From NCBI RefSeq assembly GCF_022045235.1, contig NW_027266319.1:15686001-15750000 (forward strand): a DNA stretch of 64,000 nt. The letters run 5' to 3'. This DNA is from Haliotis cracherodii. Taxonomy: Eukaryota. The position numbers and the translations under genes are program-made. The notes under the pieces were generated by a model, which was not told the DNA's origin, made no database searches, and was given only the letters and a program-made list of their open reading frames with translations. Positions 12,246 to 53,044 of the stretch are shown in pieces (position 1 is the stretch's first letter; every line of letters begins with the position of its first letter).

Positions 12246-12324
12246 TTATTCTGCAAACGATTTCTGCAAAAAATCCCATATGATAGGTACTTCGAAGAAT
12301 TTGGACACCGCCAGTTACCAGGTG

Positions 12325-12580
12325 AATGAGTGAGTTAGGTTTAACGCCGCTTTTAACAGTATTCCAGATATATCACGGCGTGTCAGCTTAATGTGGGAGG
12401 AAAGCCCGAAGTGATGCAGGTCTTAGACGTTTACCACTTCGGTGAAACCCACGAGCACGGGTATGGTGTTGACAAACCTAGAAACACAATTGGGGCGAAC
12501 CGGGATTCGAACCCACAATCATAGGTTTCTGGCGTGCCCAAGGGACGCAACTCTGCACAGCGAATCGCGGCGCCTTATAA
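12325..12580 (-). mobile_element. tRNA-derived SINE family A
   Basis: Matches full copies at 33641-33927, 35541-35820, 43961-44241 and 46437-46713. Confidence 0.8.
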
Positions 12581-20551: not shown

Positions 20552-23500
20552 TTAGAATGATACATTCACTACTTCACATAAGGCACGTCTATTTGAAGTT
20601 CTCACAGCCCACATGTACTGAAACTTGCTCGAAATAGCTATGTGCCCAGTTTGTTTGTTGACAGTGGAATTGTACCAGAACGTTGGAGTTATCTCCCTTC
20701 CATCAACCCAGCGCCATGTCCCCTCGGCCTTGTAACCTCCAAGATAGAGGTTTATGTTCTGTATATCTGAAGGAGAACAGATTAGAATTAAGATATGTTG
20801 TGGACGAGAGACATATGTAATTTATGATAAAACAGTTTAGGGAATTATAGGGATCACTCATGTCATTCCGGGAGAGGTCTCCTTTCAGGTTACGGAAAGT
20901 GACGAGTGTTGACTATCAATACCTGCATGTTTACACAATAGTGTACAAAGGTAAGACGTTATGCCAGGTGCAGATGTATTGATTTCCAGTAGGGTCCGGT
21001 GTTGAGTGTCTTTTCTATTTCATTTCTTTTACATATATATAGTAGAAGTGGACTGACATATATATATCCCGGTTCCTTGGTTACTTACCTTGACAACAGC
21101 CAATCTGTTTAACAACTTCCGCTTGTTTTTCGGGTGTGTCAATGATCAAAAGCGAGCCTCCGCTGTCGTTGCAACGCCGGGCATGTTCGGACCAAGATGC
21201 TTGTAACAGGTCGTGTCGAAAACAGAACTTCCCTATCCTGTTGTACACGTAGTCTAGAGGGCACCGGTCTAGATACGATAAGATATACAATATGTTTACA
21301 GTTCAGCTCCTTACAACGATATTAAAACTAGAACAAGTAAATGGACTTTAATTTCGCTTCTGCTCGAATAGATTAACAAAGATTCTCTGATGTGGTTGTG
21401 TATAAATCAGTACAATGTTAAATGTACAACTTGTAGTAGAAGTGGACAGACATGTGTACAACTTGAAGTAGAAGTGAACTGACCTGTGTACAACTTGTAG
21501 TAGAAGTGGAAAGACATGTGTATAACTTGTAGTAGAAGTGAACTGACATGCGTACAACTTGTAGTAGAAGTGGACTGACATTTGTACAACTTGTAGTAGA
21601 AGTAGACAGACATGTGTACAACTTGTAGTAGAAGTGGACTGACATTTGTACAACTTGTAGTAGAAGTAGACAGACATGTGTACAAGTTGCAGTAGAAGTG
21701 GACTGACATGTGTACAACTTGTAGTAGAAGTGGACTGACATGTGTACAACTTGTAGTAGAACTGGACAGACGTGTGTACAACTTGTAGTAGAACTGGACA
21801 GACATGTGTACAACTTGTAGTAGATTTGGACAGACATGTGTACAACTTGCAGTAGAAATGGACTGACATGTGTACAACTTGAAGCAGAAGTGGACTTACA
21901 TGTGTACAACTTGTAGTAGAAGTGGACTGACGTGTGTACAACTTGCAGTAGAAGTGGACTGACATGTGTACAACTTGTAGTAGAAGTGGACTGACGTGTG
22001 TACAACTTGAAGAAGAAATGGACTGACATGTGTACAACTTGCAGTAGAAGTGGACAGACATGTGTACAACTTGAAGTAGAAATGGACTGACATGTGTACA
22101 ACTTGAAGCAGAAGTGAACTTACATGTGTACAACTTGTAGTAGAAGTGGACTGACGTGTGTACAACTTGAAGAAGAAATGGACTGACATGTGTACAACTT
22201 GTAGTAGAAGTGAACTGACATGTGTACAACTTGTAGTAGAAGTGAACTGACATGTGTACAACTTGTAGTAGAAGTGGACTGACATGTGTACAACTTGTAG
22301 TAGAAGTGGACTGACATTTGTACAACTTGTAGTAGAAGTAGACAGACATGTGTACAAGTTGCAGTAGAAGTGGACTGACATGTGTACAACTTGTAGTAGA
22401 AGTGGACTGACATGTGTACAACTTGTAGTAGAACTGGACAGACGTGTGTACAACTTGTAGTAGAACTGGACAGACATGTGTACAACTTGTAGTAGATTTG
22501 GACAGACATGTGTACAACTTGTAGTAGAAATGGACTGACATGTGTACAACTTGAAGCAGAAGTGGACTTACATGTGTACAACTTGTAGTAGAAGTGGACT
22601 GACGTGTGTACAACTTGCAGTAGAAGTGGACTGACATGTGTACAACTTGTAGTAGAAGTGGACTGACATGTGTACAACTTGTAGTAGAAGTGGACTGACG
22701 TGTGTACAACTTGAAGTAGAAGTGGACTGACATGTGTACAACTTGTAGTAGAAGTGGACTGACGTGTGTACAACTTGAAGAAGAAATGGACTGACATGTG
22801 TACAACTTGCAGTAGAAGTGGACAGACATGTGTACAACTTGAAGTAGAAATGGACTGACATGTGTACAACTTGAAGCAGAAGTGAACTTACATGTGTACA
22901 ACTTGTAGTAGAAGTGGACTGACGTGTGTACAACTTGCAGTAGAAATGGACTGACATGTGTACAATTTGTAGTAGAAGTGAACAGACATGTGTACAACTT
23001 GCAGTAGAAATGGACAGACATGTGTACAAGTTGCAGTAGAAATGGACTGACATGTGTACAATTTGTAGTAGAAGTAGACAGACATGTGTACAACTTGTAG
23101 TAGAAGTGGACTGTTATGTGTACAACTTGTAGTAGAACTGACTGACATGTGTACAACTTGTAGTAGAATTGGACTGACATGTGTACAACTTGTAGTGGAA
23201 GTGGACTGACATGTGTACAACTTGTAGTAGAACTGGACTGACATGTGTACAACTTGTAGTAGAAGTGGACTGACATGTGTACAACTTGTAGTGGAAGTGG
23301 ACTGACATGTGTACAACTTGTAGTGGAAGTGGACTGACATGTGTACAATTTGTAGTGGAAGTGGACAGACATGTGTATAACTTGTAGTGGAAGTGGACTG
23401 ACATGTGTACAACTTGTAGTGGAAGTGGACTGACATGTGTACAATTTGTAGTGGAAGTGGACAGACATATGTACAACTTGTAGTAGAAGTGGACTGACAT

Positions 23501-24553
23501 GTGTACAACTTGCAGTAGAAGTGGACTGACATGTGTACAACTTGTAGTGGAAGTGGACTGACATGTGTACAACTTGTAGTAGAAGTGGACTGACATGTGT
23601 ACAAGTTGTAGTGGAAGTGGACAGACATGTGTACAACTTGTAGTAGAAGTGGACTGACATGTGTACAACGTGTAGTAGAAGTGGACTGACATGTGTACAA
23701 CTTGTAGTGGAAGTGGACAGACATGTGTATAACTTGTAGTGGAAGTGGACTGACATGTGTACAACTTGTAGTAGAAGTGGACTGACATGTGTACAACTTG
23801 CAGTAGAAGTGGACTGACATGTGTACAACGTGTAGTAGAAGTGGACTGACGTGTGTACAACTTGTAGTAGAAGTGGACAGACATGTGTACAACTTGCAGT
23901 AGAAGTGGACTGACGTGTGTACCATATTGGAACTGATCTGTGTACAGGTAAAACGTTTTCGTTAGTTTAACGAGTATTATTCTAGCTATGTGACGGCGGT
24001 CTGTAACTAATCGAGCCTGGATCAGTTATCCAGAATCCAGTGATTGACACCAGGAGCATCGATCTAAGCAATTGGGACGATGACATACTTGTAGTAGAAG
24101 TGCTCTGACCTGTGCACAACGTATAGCACAACTTGAACTGACCGTTGGTCAACGTGTAGCTGAAGTGGACTTAACCTGTCTTCACCTTGGAGGACATGTC
24201 CAGGTATTTCAAAGCTTGAAGTAAATTCTCAACTTACCCGTAAACAGCTTGAAGTAGCGCCATCCCTGTTGTGATACCCCTCTCTTCATGTTGTAGAAGT
24301 GTACAGAGTGGAGGAGACATCTGCCGGTGAGGATGTTGTAGGAGAAGGAGACACAGCGGACGTCCCTGTGACACAAAGAGGCACAGTCCCCCCTGTGGGA
24401 GAGTCCAGCATGATCTGTGATCTCATAGCGTTCATCAAGCATATTGTCATACTCAGGGACACGTACCATGGAACTTGATCTACCCTGAGCATTCGATGGG
24501 ACTCCAAATGATAAAATTGTTAAAAGTAGAGCGACGTTGGTGATGACGGGCAT
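20552..24553 (-). CDS. Secreted PAN/apple + C-type lectin-like domain protein, paralog 2 (exons 24553-24238, 21268-21089, 20766-20552)
   Basis: Same exon phases as paralog 1. Signal peptide MPVITNVALLLTILSFGVPSNAQG. The last exon, absent from the ORF track, reads DIQNINLYLGGYKAEGTWRWVDGREITPTFWYNSTVNKQTGHIAISSKFQYMWAVRTSNRRALCEVVNVSF*. Confidence 0.88.
21422..23945. repeat. 32-bp intronic satellite, ~78 copies
   Basis: Unit gtgtacaacttgtagtagaagtggactgacat. Stray units at ~21040-21060 and 24087-24175. Confidence 0.97.
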
Positions 24554-30960: not shown

Positions 30961-33900
30961 ATGTTGCTGTTGGTCTGTGTCCTAGTTGCCACCGTCACTG
31001 CTGACGTGACGCACACCACCCTCAAGTCCGGACAATGCCTCTGTGTCCACGGGGGAGGGGTCAACGCCAGAGACCACCGTGAGGCTCCATTTGTAATTTA
31101 CAATCTGCTTGCCTGAGGCTGACATCAGCTGAGTCCTATCTCAAGATTACCAATTCCCTTTTTTATGGTTTCTAGAAGTGTAATGTTTCAAAGACGTTTA
31201 TGAATTTATATAGGCAATATATTTCGTGCGTGACTGATTCTAAATACCCTAAAAATGTTTTAGTGAACTTAATCAGGTAATATTTTTGTGCATGGTTGAT
31301 TCCCTATACCCCAATAAATGTTATGTGTTGAACCAAGCAGCAACGAACGGCATGATAAAGAATTTCATCTGGAAAAGGCAATGTATTCAACTCGTTGATC
31401 CTTTTCTATTAGAATTTAGATTCACTCGAAAAAAAACGGCGTGCCGCTTTAATCAGCAACTCTAGGACCAAACATGAGACACGGGCTAAAACTTCATTTG
31501 TCAACGCATTATGTTGAACAAAAGTTACAAAGTCCGTACTGCATTAATCCGTTATCCTAGCTTTTCGAGTGATTTCGATGTGAAAGAAACATATCGCATA
31601 TGATTCAAAGGGGTGAAAGGCAAAGTTTTCATCGTAAAAGCAATCTGGTTGAAAATGAGTATCAATTTCTGTTGGCGCGTATTCGTTCTAAATATATACC
31701 AAGGCAATTTCTTACGCTGATAACTGACTGCACAATGAATATCTTCTAGGTTTGACCAACTATCTAGCTGGGCATGTGTGTCGTTAAATACAACTAGTTT
31801 CATGGGCATATGGGACGAATTAATTTTATAAATGGACCTAAAGATCAAAATCGTTCGAACATATTCTTATAAAAGGCCAATCCTGTTGTAAATGTACATA
31901 AAGGTCAAATGTGTTCTACATATATATGAAGGTCAAATGTGTTGTAGATGTACATAAAGGTCAAATGTGTTATACTTATATATGAAGGTCAAATGTGTTG
32001 TAGATGGACATGAAGGTCAAATGTGTTACACATGCACAGAAAGGTCAAATGTGTTAAAAATGTACAGAAAGGTCAAATGTGTTTTATACGTACAAAAGGT
32101 CAAATGTGTTATAAGTATACAGGAATGAAACGCGCTTCACGAATGCCTGATGCCATCTACATAGTAACTCGCTGTGGCCTCTGTCCTTTCTCGACCGAGA
32201 CACGCATTCGAATACACCTGAGGTACTGTGCTTTTGAATGCTTCGATGATGTACTTTCAGCGGGGACGTCAGGGACGACTGTGAAGGCGACACTCAACAC
32301 TGGGGAGTGTTACAAGTTCTACGGTGGGGAGCTCACGTTGGGAGCTTACAAGTGGTTCGAGATAACTGTCAGCGGACAGGTACGGTACAGAAATCATAGT
32401 TTTTGTTAGCAATGTAAGCGCTAAATTTTGTTTTTAAGCTGTTGTGTTCAGGGAAATCCATTTTCCAAATTCAAGGAAATTAACTGGCTTTGAAAAAAAA
32501 CAATTTCCACCCTTGTCTAACTAGGCTGGAATTTCGGAGTTATATTTTGGATTGACTATCGAGTCATGCATAGTTCAGTCAAAATCGCGTAACGAAATTA
32601 ACTTCCGCTTCGATAACAGTGAGTGATTGACTATGGTTTTACGCCGCTTTTAGCAATATTCCAGCAATATCAAGGCGGGGGACACAAGAAATGGGCTTCA
32701 CACATTGTACCCATGTCGGGAATCGAACCCGTGTCTTCGGCGTGACGAACGAACGATTTAACCACTAGGCTACCCGCCCGCCCCGCTTCGATATCAGCAT
32801 GGAGACTGCCGTGCAGATAAATAAAAGCGACCTTTCCATATTCATAACAAATCTCTGCTGCCAGCTGTACGATTCCGACTATACTATGGTATATGGTTCC
32901 GTCGACTGAGCGTCAACGGATATTTCCCAACTATTTTCATGTTTCTAATCCAGGTGCTATGTGTTTTTATGCACTTCCCGAGGAAAGACCCGTTTTATTA
33001 TGCAAAAAAAAAAGATCTTATTTATCGATCAGATCGTCTTGACTGGGCGCCGCCATTATGTTTGAAGCAAATGCAGGTGGTGTGAGAGGTGTAATGTGAT
33101 TGGTCAATAGAAGGGTCGTAGAAGGGACATAACTCGTAATTGCCACGTTGGAGTCACGAAACTGGACTTTTATAGTTAATTAACTCCCTCGCCTCGGGAA
33201 GATGAGGGAAATTAGGCTAAACAATAAAAAACATAGCAAATATTAATATTTTAAAACAAAGTTATCACAAAGTGTTGCTTCTTATGGTAACCAGTGAACC
33301 AACATGTTATGAAATGATATGTCCTGTAATGACATGTTATAGAATATTATGTTATGTACCAAAGTCCAGAGCAGACTGTTTTACCTGTACTTCGATACAC
33401 CTTTATTGTTTCAGCGACTCTGGGTAGCTGGGGTATACTTGAACGTCGGCACCACTGCGCAGTGTGGTACGTTTCCATGCATGTTCTTCACTCATTTGCA
33501 TCCGTCCATGTTTTGATTTTAAAAAGTCATTCAACATTTTCCTTGATTTTGACGGAGGTCGAGTGTTTCTAAGGGCACGGTTGTTACTTTGATGTAAACA
33601 TGCTTTCTGGCTTCACTGGAGCTTTTTCTGTGGAGTGTTCGGGGGCACGGGTGGCCAAGTCGTCTAAGGCGCCGCGATTCGCTGTGCAGAGTTGCGTCCC
33701 TTGGGCACGCCAGAAACCTATGATTGTGGGTTCGAATCCCGGTTCGCCCCGATTATGTTTCTAGGTTTGTCAGCACCATACCCGTACTCGTGGGTTTCAC
33801 CGAAGTGGTAAACGTCTGAGACCTGCATCTCTTCGGGCTTTCCTACCACATTAAGCTGGCACGCCGTGATATAACTGGAATAATGTTAAAAGCGGCGTTA

Positions 33901-36900
33901 AACCCAACTCACTCACTCACTCACTCACTGTGGAGTGTTCACCTGGTACAGGACATTGGTACAAACAAGTAACAGACTAGTCACTTATTTCCCCGGTTGT
34001 CATCTTTGTAATAACAGAATAATACACCGATACGTTTTATGGATTCCGCTGTAATTTAACCCTCGTTTGTGTTACAGAGATACTGTAAACTTATACATAA
34101 TATTATATATTATTGCATCGTGAAGCTGATTGATCTATCATGTTGCCTCGTGTCATGTTACTTTGCCTTGTAGCCTCCACTGGCACTGGCTCAGGATCGT
34201 GCGGAGACACTCAAGTCAAGGCATGGGCTTGTGAGCTGCTTCAACTCCACAACTCCGGCAAGATTGAGCTGTGGAAGGTTCACCCCTCTGGTGTCCATGA
34301 CAACGCTTTCTCCTACAACAACATCCGGGACACCTGCAACGGCCATGCTGCAAGCAGATCCCAGTGAGTTACATTTAATTGCAATGTAATGCGATAGCTA
34401 ACCAATGTACAGATAAGTAGTCTGTCCTCTCAGTCCGGATGTCTGTACCGTTATAACAGTCTGTACCCTCAGTCCGGATGTCTGTACCGTTATAACAATC
34501 TGTCCTCTCAGTCCGGATTTCTGTACCGTTATAACAGTCTGTCCTCTCAGTCCGGATTTCTGTACCGTTATAACAGTCTGTCCTCTCAGTCCGGATGTCT
34601 GTACCGTTATAACAGTCTGTACTCTCAGTCCAGATGTCTGTACCGTTATAACAGTCTGTCCTCTCAATCCGGATGTCTGTACCGGTATAACAGTCTGTCC
34701 ACTCATTCCGCATGTCTGTACCGTTATAACAGTCTGTACTCTCAGTCCAGATGTCTGTACCGTTATAACAGTCTGTACTCTCAGTCCAGATGTCTATACC
34801 GTTATAACAGTCTGTACTCTCATTCCAGATGTTTGTAACGTTATAACTGTCTGTCCACTCATTCCGGATGTTTGTACCGTTATAACAGTCTGTCCTCTCA
34901 GTCCGGATGTCTGTACCGTTATAACAGTCTGTACTCTCAGTCCGGATGTCTGTACCGTTATAACAATCTGTCCTCTCAGTCCGGATGCCTGTACCGTTAT
35001 AACAGTCTGTCCTCTCAGTCCGGATGTCTGTACCGTTATAACAGTCTGTACTCTCAGTCCGGATGTCTGTACCGTTATAACAATCTGTCCTCTCAGTCCG
35101 GATGCCTGTACCGTTATAACAGTCTGTCCTCTCAGTCCGGATGTATGTAACGTTATAACAATCTGTACTCTCAGTCCGGATGTCTGTACCGTTATAACAA
35201 TCTGTCCTCTCAGTCCGGATTTCTGTACCGTTATAACAGTCTGTACTCTCAGTCCGGATGTCTGTACCGTTATAACAGTCTGTCCTCTCAGTGCGGATCT
35301 CTGTACTGTTATAACAGTCTGTCCTCTCAGTACAGATGTCTGTATCGGTCTAACGTTAACAGTCTATACTCTCACTACGGATGTGTCTTTATCGTATGAA
35401 CACTCTTCCAGTTACACCTGCAATGGCTGCTTAGCTCCCGGTGGCACCATTTGCCTCAACCACGACCTCGTCCACTACCTCATCACGCTGGCAAGGAAGG
35501 GATACATGCATGTAAGAATTCATATTCTTCCTTACACAGGAGGGCACGGGTGGCCCAGTCGCCTAAGGCGCCGCGATTCGCTGTGCAGAGTTGTGTCCCT
35601 TGGGCACGCCAGAAACCTATGATTGTGGGTTCGAATCCCGGTTCGCCCCGATTATGTTTCTAGGTTTGTCAGCACGATACCCGTGTTCGTGGATTTCACC
35701 GAAGTGGTAGACGTCTGAGACCTGCATCACTTCAGGCTTTCCTCCCACATTAAGCTGGCACGCCGTGACATAACTGGAATTATGTTAAAAGCGGCGTTAA
35801 ACCCAACTCACTCACTCACTGCTTACACAATATGCTTACATCTTTCGCAAGCAGTTCAATAGCATGTGCTGCCCCATCACCAGACTGTATACTACTACTA
35901 GTGTCTAGCGAAATACTGTTGTAGATATGCTGGCAATGAAAAACAGACATAGAATATTCATAATTTGATAAAAACAATTGATGACTAAGTGAGGTGAATA
36001 TGGTATTACACCGCTTTTAGACATATTCCAACAATAGCAACAGATTTTGGATTGACAAGATAAAAAAATGTAATACATATACGATAAGATAAACTATCAC
36101 ATGGTTGGCATATGTTACTTTTATCAATACGGCGTTCACGCTAAAGCAGAAGGATGAAGAGAGCGGGTGGAAATAAAGAAAATTAAAGAAACAAGACTTC
36201 TAAAACAAATTGTATCAGATCTTTGGACGTACTGGGACCAGAAGTGGCAATTCCTTCTTAAACGCTGCTGAATCTTAATCCCGTGTCAGCACATTACCGC
36301 TGATCGTGGGTTTCCGAAAGATGCGCACGTCTCACTCAGCTGACATGCCGAGAAATTATTTTTCAGAGGAGTGTAAAATCAAACTCTCTCCCCAACTTGT
36401 TCCTTCTTTAAAAACTTCAATTCTTTAGAAAAATATCAATATGCAGAAATGTATGTGATGGACAAACGTGTACTGAAATATGTCCGTTGTTTTCTTACGT
36501 CCTCTCTATAAAAAATAGGACAAAAACATTTTCTCAAAAAGTTATTTTCACAGCCAATAGTATATAAATGCAATATTGAAATATGGTGATATACATGATG
36601 ATAAAGTTAATGAATATGATGATAAACTTGATGATATACACGATGATAAACAAGACGATAAACTCAATAAATAACTTGATGATAAACATGATGATAAATT
36701 GTGCGTCTACGACATACACTTTGAAAACCGTAAAAGGTTACCGTATCAGAATATTTATGTAGGTATTCCGGTTATTCAACATTCTATTTTCAGGTCAACG
36801 AGATAGCTGGTGCCTGTCACACATGTAACTCCCGCCACTACAGAGGTCAAGCTGTTGATCTTCACAACGGGTCAAGGTCGAAGGAATTCCTGGATCTTTG

Positions 36901-36964
36901 CTTTTCTATGAACGGATGGGGGCAAAATGAAGGGGACCATATCCATTGCCAATTTGGATACTGA
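30961..36964 (+). CDS. Secreted SH3b-domain + LAS/M15-type zinc peptidase (249 aa), candidate peptidoglycan hydrolase. Exons 30961-31078, 32261-32379, 33415-33466, 34174-34363, 35412-35511, 36794-36964
   Basis: Six GT-AG exons with phases 1,0,1,2,0 total 750 nt with no internal stop. Signal peptide MLLLVCVLVATVTA. SH3b pattern VNARDHPG...LNTGE...YKWFEI...LWVAGVYL. G/S/T linker. Catalytic-type motifs SRHYRGQAVD (H208, D215) and DHIH (H242, H244). AATAAA at 37238. Confidence 0.88.
31880..32115. repeat. ~28-30 bp degenerate minisatellite (aaggtcaaatgtgtt core)
   Basis: About 8 copies, intronic. Confidence 0.85.
33641..33927 (+). mobile_element. Full-length tRNA-derived SINE family A with a 13-bp target-site duplication
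   Basis: A-box gtggccaagtcg, B-box ggttcgaatcc, (actc)n tail; TSD ctgtggagtgttc on both sides. Confidence 0.9.
34418..35385. repeat. 39-bp intronic minisatellite, ~25 copies
   Basis: Unit ataacagtctgtcctctcagtccggatgtctgtaccgtt. Confidence 0.95.
35541..35820 (+). mobile_element. SINE family A
   Basis: Near-identical to the 33641 copy; flanked by cttacaca repeats. Confidence 0.88.
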
Positions 36965-37302
36965 TTCTATCATAACTGTATGTTTTGATATATGAACTGT
37001 ACTATAATGTATTGGTAGCACCCAGGCATCTTCAAGTTTGTTATTTCTTTGTTTTTATTTAATAACTTGTTGAACATCATGCTTGTACATGCGTATCATT
37101 ACGCGCCGTGTCCGAGGCTAACATTTTGGAGAAAGAAGTTCGAACGGTTCAAATGGAAAATGGTTTCTCGTCACTGATGATACACCTTGACTCGTGACAA
37201 AATGCGGCGTGACGTTAAATTATAATTCAATTACTCAAATAAAATGTCGGCAAATCCATTTTAGACAAAGGTGGACATGACTTGGTTTGCACCCATGGGA
37301 TT

Positions 37303-40300
37303 AGAATATACACTTGTACAAGAGAACGTACAGCTCCACCCTAGTGCATGAGAATATACACTTCCACACATGTACAAGAGAACATATAGTTCCACCATTG
37401 TACAGGAGAACATATAGTTCCACCATTGTACAGGAGAACATATAGTTCCACCATTGTACAGGAGAACATATAGTTCCACCATTGTACAGGAGAACATATA
37501 GTTCCACCATTGTACAGGAGAACATATAGTTCCACCAATGTACATGAGAACATATAGTTCCACCATTGTATATGAGAACATATAGTTCCACCATTGTACA
37601 TGAGAACATATAGTTCCACCATTGTACATGAGAACATATAGTTCCACCAATGTCCATGAGAACACACACGTCCACCAATGTACATGAGAACATATAGTTC
37701 CACCATTGTACATGAGAACATATAGTTCCACCAATGTACAAGAGAACATATAGTTCCACCATTGTACATGAGAACATATAGTTCCACCATTGTACAAGAG
37801 AACATATAGTTCCACCATTGTACAGGAGAACATATAGTTCCACCATTGTACATGAGAACATATAGTTCCACCAATGTACATGAGAACATATAGTTCCACC
37901 ATTGTACATGAGAACATATAGTTCCACCATTGTACAGGAGAACATACAGTTCCACCATTGTACAGGAGAACATATAGTTCCACCATTGTACATGAGAACA
38001 TACAGTTCCACAATTATATATGAGAACATATAGTTCCACCATTGTACATGAGAACATATAGTTCCACCATTGTACATGAGAACATATAGTTCCACCAATG
38101 TACATGAGAACACACACGTCCACCAATGTACATGAGAACATATAGTTCCACCATTGTACATGAGAACATACAGTTCCACCATTGTACATGAGAACACACA
38201 CGTCCACCATTGTACATGAGAACATATAGTTCCACCATTGTACAGGAGAACATACACGTCCACCAATGTACATGAGAACATATAGATCCACCATTGTACA
38301 AAAGAACATATAGTTCCACCATTGTACATGAGAACATATAGTTCCACCATTGTACAAGAGAACATATAGTTCCACCATTGTACATGAGAACATATAGTTC
38401 CACCAATGAACATGAGAACATATAGTTCCACCATTGTACAGGAGAACATATAGTTCCACCATTGTACATGAGAACATATAGTTCCACCATTGTACATGAG
38501 AACATATAGTTCCACCATTGTACAAGAGAACATATAGTTACACCAATGTACAGGAGAACATATAGTTTCACCATTGTACAGGAGAACATATAGTTCCACC
38601 ATTGTACATGAGAACATATAGTTCCACCATTGTACAGGAGAATACATAGCTCCACCCTTGTACATGAGAACATATAGTTCCACCATTGTACAGCAGAACA
38701 TATAGTTCCACCATTGTACAGCAGAACATATAGTTCCACCATTGTACAGGAGAACATATAGTTCCACCATTGTACAGGAGAACATATAGTTCCACCATTG
38801 TACAGGAGAACATATAGTTCCACCATTGTACAGGAGAACATATAGTTCCACCAGTGTACAGGAGAACATATAGTTCCACCATTGTACAGGAGAACATATA
38901 GTTCCACCAATGTACATGAGAACATATAGTTCCACCATTGTATATGAGAACATATAGTTCCACCATTGTACATGAGAACATATAGTTCCACCATTGTACA
39001 TGAGAACATATAGTTCCACCATTGTACAGGAGAACATATAGTTCCACCATTGTACATGAGAACATATAGTTCCACCATTGTACATGAGAACATATAGTTC
39101 CACCAATGTACATGAGAACATATAGTTCCACCATTGTACATGAGAACATATAGTTCCACCATTGTACAAGAGAACATATAGTTCCACCATTGTACAGGAG
39201 AACATATAGTTCCACCATTGTACATGAGAACATATAGTTCCACCAATGTACATGAGAACATATAGTTCCACCATTGTACATGAGAACATATAGTTCCACC
39301 ATTGTACAGGAGAACATACAGTTCCACCATTGTACAGGAGAACATATAGTTCCACCATTGTACATGAGAACATACAGTTCCACCATTATATATGAGAACA
39401 TATAGTTCCACCATTGTACATGAGAACATATAGTTCCACCATTGTACATGAGAACATATAGTTCCACCATTGTACATGAGAACACACACGTCCACCAATG
39501 TACATGAGAACATATAGTTCCACCATTGTACATGAGAACATACAGTTCCACCATTGTACATGAGAACACACACGTCCACCATTGTACATGAGAACATATA
39601 GTTCCACCATTGTACATGAGAACATACACGTCCACCAATGTACATGAGAACATATAGATCCACCATTGTACAAAAGAACATATAGTTCCACCATTGTACA
39701 TGAGAACATATAGTTCCACCATTGTACAAGAGAACATATAGTTCCACCATTGTACATGAGAACATATAGTTCCACCAATGAACATGAGAACATATAGTTC
39801 CACCATTGTACAGGAGAACATATAGTTCCACCATTGTACATGAGAACATATAGTTCCACCATTGTACATGAGAACATATAGTTCCACCATTGTACAAGAG
39901 AACATATAGTTACACCAATGTACAGGAGAACATATAGTTTCACCATTGTACAGGAGAACATATAGTTCCACCATTGTACATGAGAACATATAGTTCCACC
40001 ATTGTACAGGAAAATACATAGCTCCACCCTTGTACATGAGAACATATAGTTCCACCATTGTACAGCAGAACATATAGTTCCACCATTGTACAGCAGAACA
40101 TATAGTTCCACCATTGTACAGGAGAACATATAGCTCCACCATTGTACAGGAGAACATATAGTTCCACCATTGTACATGAGAACATATAGTTCCACCATTG
40201 TACAGGAGAATACATAGCTCCACCCTTGTACATGAGAACATATAGTTCCACCATTGTACAAGAGAACATATAGTTCCACCTTTATACATGAGAACATATA

Positions 40301-41249
40301 GTTCCACCAATGTACAGGAGAACATATAGTTCCACCATTGTACAGGAGAACATATAGTTCCACCATTGTACATGAGAACATATAGTTCCACCATTGTACA
40401 TGAGAATACATATCTCCACCCTTGTACATGAGAACATATAGTTCCACCTTTATACATGAGAACATATAGTTCCACCATTGTACAAGAGAACATATAGTTC
40501 CACCATTGTACAGCAGAACATATAGTTCCACCATTGTACATGAGAACATATAGTTCCACCATTGTACAGGAGAACATATAGTTCCACCATTGTACAGCAG
40601 AACATATAGTTCCACCATTGTACAAGAGAACACACACGTCCACCATTGTACATGAAAACATATAGTTCCACCATTGTACAGGAGAACATATAGTTCCACC
40701 ATTGTACATGAGAACATATAGTTCCACCATTGTACATGAGAACATATAGTTCCACCATTATAAATGAGAACATATAGTTCCACCATTGTACAGGAGAACA
40801 TATAGTTCCACCATTGTACAGGAGAACATATAGTTCCACCATTGTACATGAGAACATATAGTTCCACCATTGTACAAGAGAACATATAGTTCCACCATTG
40901 TACATGAGAACATATAGTTCCACCAATGTACATGAGAACATATAGTTCCACCATTGTACATGAGAACATATAGTTCCACCATTGTACAGGAGAACATATA
41001 GTTCCACCATTGTACATGAGAATACATATATCCACCCTTGTACATGAGAACATATAGTTCCACCTTTATACATGAGAACATATAGTTCCACCATTGTACA
41101 AGAGAACATATAGTTCCACCATTGTACAGCAGAACATATAGTTCCACCATTGTACAGGAGAACATATAGTTCCACCATTGTACAGGAGAACATATAGTTC
41201 CACCATTGTACAGGAGAATACATAGCTCCACCCTTGTACATGAGAACAT
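37303..41249. repeat. 28-bp satellite, subtype 1 (~140 copies)
   Basis: Unit gagaacatatagttccaccattgtacat. Confidence 0.97.
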
Positions 41250-41936: not shown

Positions 41937-43905
41937 CATCTTTTAACGTATTTTGGTATGACGCAGCCGGGAATCGAACCCCGGACCTTCCGCTCTCCGG
42001 GCGGAGGCTCTACCACGAGACCACGGAGGCGGTCTGCGGTAAATGAGAACATTCAGGGCCTTGCATGTAAATAAGAACACATAGGTCCTCGCTTGTACAT
42101 GAGAACATAGAGGACCTGGCATGTAACTGAGAACACATAGGTCCTCGCTGGTACATGCGAATATAGAGGACCTGGCATGTAACTGAGAACACATAGGTCC
42201 TCGCTTGTACATGAGAATATAGAGGACCTGGCATGTAACTGAGAACACATAGGTCCTCGCTGGTACATGAGAATATAGAGGACCTGGCATGTAACTGAGA
42301 ACACATAGGTCCTCGCTGGTACATGAGAATATAGAGGACCTGGCATGTAACCGAGAACACATAGGTCCTCGCTGGTACATGCGAATATAGAGGACCTGGC
42401 ATGTAACTGAGAACACATAGGTCCTCGCTGTTACATGAGAACATAGAGGTCCTCGCTTGTGCATAAGAACACATAGGTCCTCGCTTGTACATGAGAACAT
42501 AGAGGTCCTCGCATGTAAATGAGAACACATAGGTCCTCGCTGGTACATGAGAATATAGAGGACCTGGCATGTAACTGAGAACACATAGGTCCTCGCTGGT
42601 ACATGAGAATATAGAGGACCTGGCATGTAACTGAGAACACATAGGTCCTCGCTGGTACATGCGAATATAGAGGACCTGGCATGTAACTGAGAACACATAG
42701 GTCCTCGCTTGTACATGAGAATATAGAGGACCTGGCATGTAACTGAGAACACATAGGTCCTCGCTGGTACATGAGAATATAGAGGACCTGGCATGTAACT
42801 GAGAACACATAGGTCCTCGCTGGTACATGCGAATATAGAGGACCTGGCATGTAACTGAGAACACATAGGTCCTCGCTGGTACATGAGAATATAGAGGACC
42901 TGGCATGTAACTGAGAACACATAGGTCCTCGCTGTTACATGAGAACATAGAGGTCCTCGCTTGTGCATAAGAACACATAGGTCCTCGCTTGTACATGTGA
43001 ACACATAGGTCCTCGCTGGTACATGAGAAGACATAGGTCCTCGCTTGTATATGAGAACATAGGGGTCCTTGCTTGTGCATAAGGACACATAGATCTTCGG
43101 TTGTAAATGAGAACAAATATGTCCTCGCTGGTACATGAGAACACAGAGGTCCTTGCATGTAAATGAGAACACATAGGTCCTCGATGGAACACGAGAACAT
43201 AGAGGTCCTCGCTCTGTGCATAAGAACACATAGATCTTCGGTTGTAAATGAGAACACATAGGTCCTCGCTGGAAAACGAGAACATAGGGGTCCTCGCTCT
43301 GTGCATAAGAACACATAGGTCTGCGGTTGTAAATGAGAACACATAGGTCCTCGCTGGTACATGAGAACATAGAGATCCTCGCTGGTACATAAGAACACAT
43401 AGGTCCTCGCTGGTACATGCGAACACATAGGTCCTCGCTTGTATATGAGAACATATAGGTCCTTGCTGGAACACGAGAACATAGAGGTCCTTGCATGTAA
43501 ATGAGAACACATAGGTCCTCGCTGGTACATGCGAACACATAGGTCCTCGTTTGTATATGAGAACATATAGGTCCTTGCTGGAACACGAGAACATAGAGGT
43601 CCTTGCATGTAAATGAAAACACATAGGTCCTCGCTGGAACACGAGAACATAGAGGTCCTAGCTTGTGCATAAGAACACATAGGTCTTCGGTTGTAAATGA
43701 GAACACATATGTCCTCGCTGGAACACGAGAACAAAGAGGTCCTCGCTTGTGCATAAGAACACATAGGTCCTCGCTTGTAAATGAGAAGACATATGTCCTC
43801 GCTGGTACATGAGAACATAGAGGTCCTCGCTGGTACATGAGAACGTAGAGGTCCTCGCTGGAACGTGAGAACACATAGGTCCGTCAACATTTGTACATCA
43901 GAACA
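41250..43905. repeat. 28-bp satellite, subtype 2, partly organised as 56-bp dimers; interrupted by a family D SINE with (GT)n at 41827-42034
   Basis: Units gagaacacataggtcctcgctggtacat and gagaatatagaggacctggcatgtaact. Confidence 0.95.
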
Positions 43906-43960
43906 TATACACACAGACCACCCATTTTCCCTTAGAACATGCGATGGAATGTGACAAGTG

Positions 43961-44241
43961 AGTGAGTGAGTGAGTTGGGTTTAATGCCGCTTTTAACAGT
44001 ATTACAGTTATATCACGGCGTGCCAGCTTAATGTGGGAGGAAAGCCCGAAGTGATGCGAGTCTCAGACGTTAACCACTTCGGTGAAACCCACGAGCACTG
44101 GTATGGTGCTGACAAACCTAGAAACAAAATCGGGGCGAACCGGGATTCGAACCCAAAATCATAGGTTTCTGGCGTGCCCAAGGGACGCAACTCTGCAAAG
44201 AGAATCGGGGCGCCTTAAACGACTGGGCCACCCGTGCCCCC
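43961..44241 (-). mobile_element. SINE family A with target-site duplication
   Basis: TSD tgtgacaagtg on both flanks. Confidence 0.88.
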
Positions 44242-45545: not shown

Positions 45546-48500
45546 ATGTCCGCCATGTTGCTTTTGCTGCGTCTTTGCGTTCTACAGGCATCCATACTGG
45601 TAATAGCTGCAATGGAGGGCGTTGCTCTCCAACAAGGGGCGTGTGTGTGTGCCACGGAGGGTCTCGTGGACGCGTATTCAAAACGTGAGCATTATTAACT
45701 GCTAATGTGAATCCATGTCCCATGACAGATTATATAACTACAGTTGTTGACGGGACATGAGAGACGTGTGACGAGGCAGGTGGCTCGTGCAACGTTCTCC
45801 ATACTGGCCTGGGAATTGTATCTCGTTCCGATAGTACTCTTACCGGGATTTTTTTCCAAACTATTACCTCTATTACAGAAGTCCAATGATATAAGATATG
45901 AATATGATTATCAAAATCTTTTTACCATGAAATTTCAACTCACATTGAATTTTCAAGGCGTCAGGTGTATTTTTTCATGGTAATACTGAACTTTCGTAAG
46001 TTATGAAATCTGACCTACACAAATTCCAAATATGTGAAGGCGCTTGTAACTTCATTTCATCAATATACCAACAAATAACATTCGGGCTATTTTATTTCCA
46101 TTCTTGTATCATCAATTCCCTGGATCCATTCGCCACAACAATGCCGTTAAGGACTTGACGTCACACATCTTAATCTATGTTACCACATATTTAGCACGGA
46201 ATTTCTCTCGCTCTTGTGAGTAATGTGACTGGAGAATTTGTTTACATGTAAGTGTTCAATGTCATTTGTATCGAGCTCAAAGCGAAGCTAATGCAGCGTA
46301 TGGATCCAGGGTAATTGTCAATACAGAATGTACATATTACACACTGGATAATCGAGGGTGGTGTGGAAACAACTGGCGACAGTCCATTTTACGGCTTGGA
46401 ACACCTTCCTGGATCCACTTTCAACAAGGAAACTATGAGTGAGTGAGTTGGGTTTAAGGCCGCTTTTAACAGTATTACAGTTATATCGCGGCTTGTCAGC
46501 TTAATGTGGGAGGAAAGCCCGAAGTGATGCAGGTCTCAGACGTTTACCACTTCGGTGAAACCCACGAGCACGGGGATGGGGTTGACAAACCTAGAAACAT
46601 AATTGGGGCGAACCGGGATTCGAACCCACAATCATAGGTTTCTGGCGTGCCCAAGGGACGCAACTCTGCACAGCGAATCGCGGCGCCTTAGACGACTGGG
46701 GCACCCGTGCCCCTAAGGAAACTATAATACGTCCATGTTGAAATATACAGACCATGGCCAAGTTCTTGAAGGGAGCAGGTCCCTGTCAGCATGGATTGCA
46801 TGAATGTGGGGTGCAGTGAATGAGTGAATGAATGTTGTTATGTGACGCAGTCTGCCAGGGTATTTGTTAAAAAAACCCAGCACAATCGACTCTGATCCTG
46901 GAAAAAGCAGGTGACACGGTTTCACCATCCGCCCCAATTCTGTGAGTGAGTGAGTGAGTGAATTTGGTTTTAAAACACTTTTGAAGAGCTTAACAGTTAT
47001 TTCACGGCGTATCAGCTTGGCGGGAGAGAAAGGCCCGAAACAATAACACCTGTTCCACTTTGGTGCAACCAACGAGCACAGATACGTTGCTGACAAACCA
47101 AGAAACAATCAGGGCAGATCTAGGATTCTAATCCACGATCAAGACCGTCTCCGTGGTCTAGTGGTAGAGCGTCCGCCCGGAGACCGAAAGGTCCGGGGTT
47201 CGATCCCCGGCCGCGTCATACCAAAAGACGTTAAAAGATGGTACTTGTTGCTACCCTGTCTGGCGCTCGGTATTAAGGGGCTAAAACACGAACTGGTCGG
47301 CTCGGAGTCAGTATACGGTATTCATGTTCAACTGAGGCATGGTATCTCAGTGAGCTAGCACTATAAATCGGCATCATTCCGGACTAGTACAAGCAGCCAC
47401 ACACACACACACATACACGTGCATGCACGTCGCTATATCAGTGCAATAATCTTGGACGCGACGTTAAACCCAATTTCACCTCACATTATCCACGATCAGA
47501 GGTGTCTGGCACGCCTAAGGGATGTAAGTCTACCCAGTCTGTCGGATCGCCTTGCTCGACGACTGTGCCACCCGTGGCCCGTTACTCAGTTCAACGTGTG
47601 AAGGAAGCTACGTAGAATCACGCGTCACTGTGAGGAGCTTCAGCAACCTAACGACAAACGTAGAACACGAAATAATGCCGTACTGCGTCAATACATGGGA
47701 CAACGCGTAATACAGTGAATAACGCAATACAACACGGACCAATGTAGGACTAAGTGAAATTAGCTGAAAACATCGGTCGATGAAGATACATCATTGACTA
47801 CCGTATTGCTCATGTGAAGTGTGTTTCTTCCAGCTGGTTTCGACAGCGAGAGCATCACGTACATCAGTTTTGGAGAATGTCTACGGTCAAACGGCCAAAG
47901 CATGGAGATGAACGGAGACTCGTGGTACGGCGTGGCAGTCAAGAATGAGGTCAGTCCCATGTTCAATGGAATTAGAATCATTCAAGTTTCAAAATATTGA
48001 ATGCTATATAATTGTTCATTTATAGGAGACTTCTCCGAACTGTGGAGGGTTTCCTCCCACATATACACGGTCCGTCAAATGCAGTGTAACATTTAGGGCC
48101 ATTGACGTCGGCAGTGCCCGTGAAGATCCGGGGTAGAATAGGTCTTCAGCAACCCATGCTTGCCGTAAAAGGTGACTGCTTGTCGTAAGAGGCGACGAAC
48201 GGGATCGGGTGGTAAGGCTCGCTGACTTGGTTGATGCATGTAATCTTTTCCCAATTGTATGGATCGATGTTCATGATGTCAATCAATGGATTGTCTGGTC
48301 CAGATACGATTATTTACAGACCGCCGTCATATCGCCGGAATGTTGCTGAGTGCGGCGTCAAACAAACAAAACAAGCCTCAAGAGAACAATAAAAGCGCCC
48401 GTAAAATACCCGTTTAATGACATGCGTGGATATGTTTTTACGCCTTTTGGCTGTATTCCACCAGAAATGGGCGTAAACCATTGTACACATGGAGAATCGA

Positions 48501-48700
48501 ATCCGGATCTACGACTTCACCAACGAACGCTTTATGCTACCCCTCCCCTACCTCATTGTTATCATTCAGTGTTGTTGCACGACCGGTGGTCAGTGTTAGG
48601 ATTGATGTGTTCTGGATTGTTTCAGGAGCTGACATCCCCCCGGTTGCTATGGGTTGCAGGCAGGTTCCTGAAGCAGGGCATCCCCTCACAATGTGCTTAG
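45546..48700 (+). CDS. Secreted SH3b-only protein (109 aa), paralog of the N-terminal half of the 30961 gene. Exons 45546-45684, 47834-47949, 48626-48700
   Basis: Same intron positions and phases (1,0) as the 30961 gene. MSAMLLLLRLCVLQASILVIAA...GACVC...PG...GEC...SWYGV...LWVAGRFL...SQCA*. All four Cys of the domain are conserved. Confidence 0.8.
46437..46713 (-). mobile_element. SINE family A with target-site duplication
   Basis: TSD aaggaaactat on both flanks. Confidence 0.88.
47143..47483 (+). mobile_element. tRNA-derived SINE family D, near full length, nested in an older family-A-like copy (~46945-47580)
   Basis: A/B boxes gtggtctagtgg and ggttcgatccc; atccacgatca is repeated on both sides. 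Confidence 0.75.
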
Positions 48701-52879: not shown

Positions 52880-53044
52880 NNNNNNNNNNNNNNNNNNNNN
52901 NNNNNNNNNNNNNNNNNNNNNNNNNNNNNNNNNNNNNNNNNNNNNNNNNNNNNNNNNNNNNNNNNNNNNNNNNNNNNNNNNNNNNNNNNNNNNNNNNNNN
53001 NNNNNNNNNNNNNNNNNNNNNNNNNNNNNNNNNNNNNNNNNNNN
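52880..53044. other. Assembly gap (N run)
   Basis: Direct observation. Confidence 1.

Follow-up and report, generated by a model that had tools for sequence, protein, structure and literature searches.

How does an animal come to carry a gene with the architecture of a bacterial cell wall hydrolase, and what does its product do? This question is raised by a gene of the black abalone Haliotis cracherodii, located on the forward strand at 30961-36964 of the window, the stretch of 64,000 nucleotides that was analyzed here (RefSeq assembly GCF_022045235.1, contig NW_027266319.1, positions 15,686,001 to 15,750,000). An earlier note, made from the sequence alone, had described six exons that splice into a secreted protein with an SH3b domain, a linker and a LAS/M15 zinc peptidase domain, presumably acquired from bacteria. 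It proved to be a genuine gene of the abalone that is both spliced and transcribed. Its product is best read as a secreted SH3b + LAS zinc peptidase that derives from a bacterium and serves in antibacterial defence or in the digestion of bacteria, a reading to which we assign a probability of about 0.65. By profile, the family domain is found in dozens of molluscs and bacteria, which is far beyond chance.

Gene Structure and Splicing

The gene comprises six exons with a combined frame of 750 nt (249 codons and a TGA stop codon). Every exon border is canonical (GT..AG with a pyrimidine tract) and the phases are compatible. All exons lie on the + strand. Exon 1 (30961-31078) contains the start codon, a predicted signal peptide (residues 1-14) and the first SH3b strands, and ends in phase 1. 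The SH3b core (residues 40-79) is encoded by exon 2 (32261-32379), and the last SH3b strands, with the RLWVAG...YL motif, by exon 3 (33415-33466), which runs up to C96 and is followed by a phase-1 intron. Exon 4 (34174-34363) encodes residues 97-160, which comprise a Gly/Ser linker followed by the first third of the LAS domain, with H133, D139, D149, and R158. The middle of this domain (residues 160-193), with a P169-G-G motif and a helix at 177-189, is located in exon 5 (35412-35511). Exon 6 (36794-36964) encodes the catalytic core (residues 194-249, including E196, H202, S206, H208, D215, C229, E239, H242, H244, and C245) and the stop codon. The encoded protein has 15 cysteines, one of which lies inside the predicted signal peptide, so that the 14 cysteines of the mature chain, the predicted signal peptide and the five introns are as the earlier note had counted them.

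A search with exon 6 alone, and then with a full-length relative, led to a public protein of 249 aa (P0053), named only ‘uncharacterized protein [Haliotis cracherodii]’ in NCBI and UniRef. This protein is equal to all six exon translations plus the three split codons, and the gene model therefore equals the public black abalone annotation. Splicing was examined in four public runs (X1, X2, X4, and X5), which represent four studies and carry four organism labels. Each of the four yields one contig of 747-863 nt with joined exons at 98-99% identity. The joints between exons 2 and 3, 3 and 4, 4 and 5, and 5 and 6 are present in all four runs at the predicted borders, and the joint between exons 1 and 2 (31078>32261) is present in X1, X4, and X5. 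The introns have zero depth in these runs, apart from interspersed repeats. More broadly, 17 small runs contain 11-14% of the sequence words of the stretch, which is approximately its exon share. Exon 6 has a single locus in the abalone genome (1.18 Gb, 80 contigs), and a processed DNA copy is thus not the source of the joined contigs. The six-exon structure with which the analysis started is borne out by these borders, this frame, the identity with P0053 and the joined contigs.

The contigs of X1 and X5 carry synonymous substitutions of T for C at a third codon base at 31077 and 34361, beside two splice donors. Scanning the gene region with Rfam and for tRNAs found nothing, and Pfam and PDB sequence searches with single exons gave no match, as the exons are too short.

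The N-Terminal SH3b Domain

An AlphaFold model of P0053 was built from a 52-sequence alignment and has a predicted local distance difference test (pLDDT) score of 90.6. Residues 20-94 of this model form an SH3b fold, with the top structural matches at Z 9.0-9.7. The matches are wall-binding domains of autolysins and endolysins, specifically YrvJ (9.7), 9ovi (9.0), BT_1314 (8.6-9.3), the phiSM101 endolysin (8.9), LytB (8.4-8.8), and the SH3b domain of lysostaphin (7.3-7.8); the best matches include the SH3b domain of Bacillus anthracis GBAA_2967. The SH3b claim holds at the level of the fold, although the Pfam scores stay below the cut-off: against SH3_3 (PF08239, cut-off 27), P0053 reaches 14.8 bits and P0024 17 bits. 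The orthologs P0048, P0049, and P0086 do carry a precomputed PF08239 match. The domain, encoded by exons 1-3, would dock on peptidoglycan. Cyanovirin-N was considered as an alternative for the N-terminal domain (phmmer E-value of 2.5e-4 for P0024, and one UniRef name) and was rejected, as the structure places the domain among SH3b.

Fold and Active Site of the Catalytic Domain

In the same model, residues 101-249 adopt the Hedgehog/DD-peptidase (LAS) fold, which corresponds to the Pfam clan Peptidase_MD. The alignment with Hedgehog N-domains gives Z 7.8-7.9 over 104 residues and that with 1lbu, the zinc D-Ala-D-Ala carboxypeptidase of Streptomyces albus G, gives Z 7.1 over 100 residues; IhhN is also among the top structural matches. 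A second model, of a catalytic-domain-only paralog from Physella (P0057, pLDDT 92.5), was compared with 48,161 chains. Twelve of these reach Z >= 5, and seven of the 12 are Hedgehog N-domains or LAS enzymes. The highest values were obtained for ShhN (7.9), 1lbu (7.4), Drosophila Hh (7.2), ShhN again (6.2), VldE (6.1), VanX (5.3), Ply500 (5.0), and MepA (also 5.0), followed by LysB4, DacB, VanXYg, and the T5 peptidase. Foldseek, which the earlier note had proposed as a check, agrees: the first 40 ranks listed are Hedgehog N-domains, then 1lbu and Ply500. A family profile aligns with ShhN exactly over the zinc motifs (E-value of 8.6e-5, and 8.5e-6 with the bacterial members added). It is the combination of middling Z-scores with this motif-level sequence match to ShhN that settles the fold. 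With two high-confidence models and their fold searches, the SH3b + LAS architecture is thereby supported.

The protein contains the motifs S206-x-H208-x2-G211-x-A213-x-D215 and H242-x-H244, i.e., the zinc-type H-x6-D followed by H-x-H. Conservation was assessed in an alignment of 68 animal-side and 30 bacterial domains. H202, H208, G211, and D215 are kept in 67-68 of the 68 animal sequences and in 29-30 of the 30 bacterial ones (H208 in 68 and 29, D215 in 68 and 30, respectively). S206, Y209, A213, H133, D139, D149, R158, P169-G-G, and E196 are conserved in both groups, as are the C229/C245 pair and the two histidines H242 and H244; these histidines and R158 are nearly invariant. Animal sequences also conserve E239, and six further cysteines occur on the animal side only, which fits stabilization for extracellular life. 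The roles of the corresponding residues in LAS enzymes are established and, by analogy with these and with Shh, H208, D215, and H244 would be the zinc ligands, as in Shh and the DD-peptidase. H242, H202, and E239 would take part in catalysis, and R158 may bind the carboxylate of the substrate. On the Hedgehog side, the analogy draws on the zinc site of Shh (PMC6027127).

No Pfam or NCBIfam model reaches its threshold for any family member scanned, and the family thus represents an uncurated LAS subfamily. In orthologs and bacterial relatives, the best scores are 13-17 bits for Peptidase_M15_3 (cut-off 23.2) and 11-22.7 bits for Peptidase_M15_4 (cut-off 25), and P0053 itself has no match to either. 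From the proposed LAS/M15 zinc peptidase, the LAS fold and both zinc motifs therefore stand; the M15 assignment stays below the Pfam thresholds, and the Hedgehog N-domains are nearer than the Streptomyces DD-peptidase.

Relatives in Molluscs and Bacteria

The named eukaryotic members recovered in three large searches are all molluscs, both gastropods (Haliotis, Lottia, Patella, Littorina, Nucella, Batillaria, Babylonia, Pomacea, Biomphalaria, Physella, and Plakobranchus) and bivalves (Ruditapes, Mactra, Mya, Dreissena, Sinanodonta, Mytilus, Ylistrum, Ostrea, Crassostrea/Magallana, and Tegillarca). The SH3b + LAS layout is present in gastropods and bivalves alike. Other mollusc members have the SH3b domain replaced by paired Cys-rich repeats, VWA, or a SleB-type Hydrolase_2 domain, and those with Cys-rich repeats are annotated as ‘lysozyme 3’ or ‘lysozyme 1-like’. 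A protein of Magallana gigas (P0098, 460 aa), annotated as ‘Spore cortex-lytic enzyme’, consists of a SleB-type Hydrolase_2 and a LAS domain, i.e., two bacterial-type wall hydrolase modules within one animal protein.

The bacterial homologs amount to 36 loci in at least seven phyla, with representatives in Chloroflexota, Actinomycetota, Pseudomonadota, Verrucomicrobiota, Bacteroidota, Myxococcota, Saccharimonadota, and Bacillota; they include Herpetosiphon and other Chloroflexota, Minicystis, Verrucomicrobiota, Alphaproteobacteria, Flavobacterium, Saccharibacteria, actinomycetes, and Clostridia. Along its whole length, the domain is 32-45% identical between animals and bacteria, and a hidden Markov model (HMM) built from mollusc sequences only scores the bacterial homologs at 60-124 bits over nearly the full domain length, with lectin-fused proteins of actinomycetes on top. 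The fusion partners in bacteria are diverse and reveal how the module is used there. Herpetosiphon has a signal peptide and two PG_binding_1 domains in addition to the LAS domain, and in Filomicrobium an Amidase_3 domain is fused to it. Actinomycete members (P0073) carry a B_lectin or ricin lectin fusion, as in lectin-like bacteriocins, Saccharibacteria have a type IV secretion system (T4SS) pilin fusion, and GH46-like domains are a further partner. In Minicystis, the LAS domain is fused to a PAAR motif, a mark of type VI effectors. The respective protein of Minicystis rosea (L022, CP016211.1 8073720-8074670) is a PAAR protein that ends in the LAS domain and is likely a type VI secretion effector against the cell wall.

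Seventeen bacterial relatives were scanned against Pfam, and not one of them contains an SH3b domain (the open reading frames L029 and L035, which have a stop inside the match, were excluded from these scans). The SH3b-LAS fusion was therefore probably assembled in molluscs. The layout of autolysins and endolysins, to which the abalone protein had been likened, is present as SH3b-linker-LAS, but it has no counterpart among those 17 relatives.

Origin of the Gene

A maximum-likelihood tree of 98 domains separates the 30 bacterial sequences from the 68 animal and unnamed ones with a Shimodaira-Hasegawa-like approximate likelihood ratio test (SH-aLRT) support of 100. This tree is unrooted. The phylogeny that had been suggested as a check thus delivers a clean split between animals and bacteria, but not a nesting of the animal sequences inside bacteria. 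As the outgroup root is unsupported, the direction of transfer rests on the distribution, the putative bacterial substrate and the bacterial accessory modules. The horizontal acquisition that the earlier note had proposed is supported by a family confined to molluscs among named eukaryotes and spread over at least seven bacterial phyla with wall-directed or antagonistic fusions. Taken together, the restriction of the named eukaryotic members to molluscs and the wall hydrolase or antibacterial character of the bacterial relatives indicate that molluscs probably took the gene from bacteria. An ancient transfer from a bacterium to a mollusc, followed by exon shuffling, is the best reading.

A profile search of the abalone genome retrieves only this gene and, beyond it, the hedgehog gene at an E-value of 0.003. 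The hedgehog exon is located on another contig (L041, G000:C10:21279001-21279162) and scores 165 bits against HH_signal. The weak and distant match argues against a diverged hedgehog paralog. The hedgehog exon keeps the full H-x6-D and H-x-H zinc motif. A phage endolysin origin was also considered and rejected: a screen of 50,697 phage genomes yielded no homolog, and IMG/VR contains only two loci of the LAS family.

The module border in the gene coincides with the phase-1 intron after exon 3, which separates the SH3b module from the enzyme module. About 8.6 kb downstream of the enzyme gene, on the same strand, we found a predicted SH3b-only paralog (45546-48700, +) with three predicted exons (45546-45684, 47834-47949, and 48626-48700) and the same intron phases (1, 0). 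A tblastn search with exon 3 matches 48647-48694 at 56% identity (E-value of 0.001), and the paralog has its stop right after the ...QCA motif, one codon past the equivalent of the end of exon 3. The phase-1 module border, together with the equal phases and the matching stop of the paralog, fits exon shuffling within molluscs. The product of the paralog is a predicted secreted SH3b-only protein and looks like a tandem copy of the binding module.

Proposed Function and Alternative Explanations

The abalone gene would encode a secreted, disulfide-rich two-domain protein with a mature chain of residues 15-249 and seven predicted disulfides; its C-terminal domain (exons 4-6) would act as a zinc metallopeptidase of the LAS fold. 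The target of such an enzyme would be an amide bond in the stem peptides or in the cross-links of bacterial walls; which bond is not readable from the sequence. The catalytic domain is a member of an uncurated bacterial group of wall hydrolases that is used by predatory bacteria, in PAAR (type VI) effectors and in lectin-type, bacteriocin-like proteins. An early mollusc, before the split of gastropods and bivalves, most likely acquired the LAS domain from a bacterium. Introns, a signal peptide and additional disulfides would have been acquired by the domain thereafter, and it would have been shuffled onto SH3b, beta-defensin-like Cys-rich repeats, VWA, and a SleB-type hydrolase. The likely role is antibacterial defence or the digestion of bacteria. 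A more specific version is tentative and falls somewhat short of an even chance: before gastropods and bivalves diverged, an LAS zinc peptidase serving as an interbacterial weapon, which bacteria couple to PAAR/type VI, bacteriocin-lectin and predator secretion modules, may have been captured and diversified by exon shuffling into a modular set of bacteriolytic effectors linked to SH3b, defensin repeats, VWA, or SleB. If so, the family would be a metallopeptidase counterpart of tick Dae2 and a second, enzymatically intact animal use of the fold from which the Hedgehog ligand arose.

Several points weigh against the reading as a bacterium-derived wall peptidase. That the four runs are RNA is a guess. 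Z-scores of 7-8 and a Foldseek E-value of about 0.02 are modest by themselves and, as no Pfam or NCBIfam family reaches its threshold, the enzyme class is assigned from fold and motifs. On the side of the origin, rooting the tree with the abalone hedgehog and with P0040/P0041 (divergent, bacterial-looking proteins of 900 aa, which we take to be of the candidate-phyla-radiation type) gives an unstable root with supports of 0.6-0.7. In addition, 33 of the sequences on the animal side stem from unnamed contigs of transcriptomes or metagenomes, among which other phyla may be represented.

Two of these points would suit a vertical descent, in which molluscs retained an old animal member of the Hedgehog/DD-peptidase superfamily that most other phyla have lost, with the bacterial look-alikes being distant cousins or recipients themselves. 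The unnamed sequences might then come from further phyla, and an unrooted tree with animals and bacteria at the two sides of one long branch is what a deep divergence would give; the nearest solved relatives are, moreover, animal Hedgehog N-domains. We nevertheless regard vertical descent as quite improbable. It demands many independent losses to leave molluscs as the only named eukaryotes with a match, the identity between animal and bacterial domains extends over the full domain and includes a shared Cys pair, and the relationship to hedgehog is remote from both sides, with the abalone hedgehog at the above E-value against the family profile and P0053 lacking an HH_signal match. That the gene represents bacterial DNA contaminating the assembly, or an open frame that arose by chance, has a practically negligible probability; no supporting point was found, and we count it as already refuted. 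The gene lies on a 70-Mb chromosome-scale contig, its five spliceosomal introns carry animal interspersed repeats of many copies, its exons are joined in contigs of four studies, and orthologs occur in many mollusc genomes. It is integrated in the abalone genome and is genuine animal DNA.

A different objection accepts the fold and questions the job. The protein might act on a host substrate (proteins of the extracellular matrix, shell or mucus) or be a non-catalytic wall sensor or opsonin. Hedgehog uses the same fold without known wall cleavage (PMC6027127), and a host-substrate role has been proposed for the zinc site of Shh; the stand-alone SH3b paralog next door hints at binding-only roles as well. 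Such a role is unlikely in our view, as the full catalytic set is kept in nearly all animal members, which is expected of an active enzyme, and the partner modules are wall-directed (SH3b, PG_binding_1, Amidase_3, SleB-type Hydrolase_2, and the lysozyme-type Cys-rich repeats; PMC7379824). We retain the antibacterial or digestive wall peptidase as the preferred reading.

Repeats and Other Features of the Window

Intron 4 contains a 39-bp tandem repeat (34419-35344; 23.7 copies, 92% identity) and intron 1 a second tandem array with a 28/56-bp unit (31884-32121). Introns 3 (33642-33921) and 5 (35542-35820) each contain a copy of an interspersed repeat that is about 280 bp long and 94-95% identical between copies, with more copies at 43957-44241 (-), 46436-46713 (-), and 12322-12577 (-). 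Another interspersed repeat is located at 32610-32800. Both interspersed repeats have an enormous depth from transcriptome-like contigs.

Three long regions on the reverse strand, at 37261-41249, 41943-43914, and 21348-23925, are open in several frames simultaneously. The translation of 38568-40745 (-) consists of a unit of about 28 aa repeated about 26 times, which points to tandemly arrayed, satellite-like DNA and not to an obvious gene; the strand composition is skewed there. An assembly gap (run of N) is found at 52880-53044.

Significance

If the protein is active, it would represent an undescribed class of antibacterial enzyme in molluscs, which have no adaptive immunity and of which major aquaculture species suffer from Vibrio disease. 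It would cut peptide bonds of the wall, in contrast to the sugar bonds cut by lysozymes and the amide bond cut by PGRP. An active enzyme would also extend the short list of bacterial weapons domesticated by animals with a metallopeptidase, define an LAS subfamily of bacteria and molluscs that is not curated so far, and provide a relative of the Hedgehog N-domain that is still an intact enzyme in an animal, with which the original role of the zinc site could be addressed. Stabilized by disulfides, it would be a possible lead for new lytic enzymes.

Comparison with Known Systems

The Streptomyces albus G carboxypeptidase is the archetype of the LAS enzymes (MEROPS M15). It shares with the abalone protein the fold over about 100 residues (Z 7.1-7.4), the H-x6-D plus H-x-H zinc motif and an upstream Arg (R158 in the abalone protein). 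The identity is only 14-18%, however, and 1lbu is not reached by sequence search. The abalone protein has an SH3b instead of a PG_binding_1 N-terminal domain, possesses extra disulfides and lacks an M15 Pfam match.

The Hedgehog N-domain (ShhN and IhhN; HH_signal, PF01085) is the best solved match by both profile and structure. The profile match to ShhN spans the region from ...H-x5-H-Y-x-G-x-A-V-D to H-I-H-C, and the two have in common the zinc triad, a residue equivalent to Shh H135 and a Glu directly in front of H-x-H. In contrast to Hedgehog, the abalone protein ends at the LAS domain without Hint/Hog and has an SH3b domain attached, and its family is restricted to molluscs among named eukaryotes and has close bacterial homologs. 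P0053 shows no HH_signal match even at E <= 1, compared to 165 bits for the abalone hedgehog exon.

Lysostaphin, ALE-1, and phage endolysins also combine an LAS-class catalytic domain with SH3b, and their SH3b domains match that of the abalone protein at Z 7.1-8.9. The order is reversed, as the abalone SH3b domain is N-terminal, and the catalytic domain is not M23.

Tick Dae2 is a domesticated amidase effector derived from bacterial type VI Tae effectors (see bioRxiv 10.1101/2020.04.10.036376). The proposed history of the abalone gene resembles that of Dae2, in that a bacterial wall-degrading weapon would have been taken by an animal, gained introns and a signal peptide and been used against bacteria; one bacterial relative of the present family is a PAAR (type VI) fusion. 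The two differ in that Dae2 is a Cys-His amidase of another fold and not a zinc peptidase, and in host group and domain architecture.

The rusticalin-like proteins are likewise secreted, about 250-270 aa long and equipped with a C-terminal Hedgehog/DD-peptidase fold for which a bacterial origin has been proposed. They occur in tunicates, amphioxus, corals, and placozoans (PMC6339383, PMC7379824). Outside placozoans, corals, and basal chordates they have not been reported, and molluscs are described as lacking them (PMC6339383). The rusticalin domain resembles the L-Ala-D-Glu peptidase of phage A500, of the Peptidase_M15_4 type (PMC6339383), whereas the mollusc family stays below the M15_3 and M15_4 thresholds and matches Ply500 only at Z 5.0, behind Hedgehog and 1lbu. 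The abalone protein carries SH3b instead of two beta-defensin-like Cys-rich repeats; it is set apart from rusticalin on the basis of these published descriptions. Mollusc paralogs from Lottia (P0067) and Patella (P0010) do have paired Cys-rich repeats in front, as in rusticalin. In eukaryotes, such repeats are found alongside lysozyme, amidase, and M15 domains of the prokaryote type, and those of the mollusc paralogs are also found on mollusc lysozymes (PMC7379824).

The literature was searched by topic and by locus names, and no paper on the mollusc LAS family turned up. The domestication of bacterial wall hydrolases by animals is already known, with tick Dae2 and the rusticalin-like proteins as the closest precedents, and the present case differs from these in its catalytic subfamily (uncurated, and closest to Hedgehog and the DD-peptidase), its host phylum and its fusion to SH3b.

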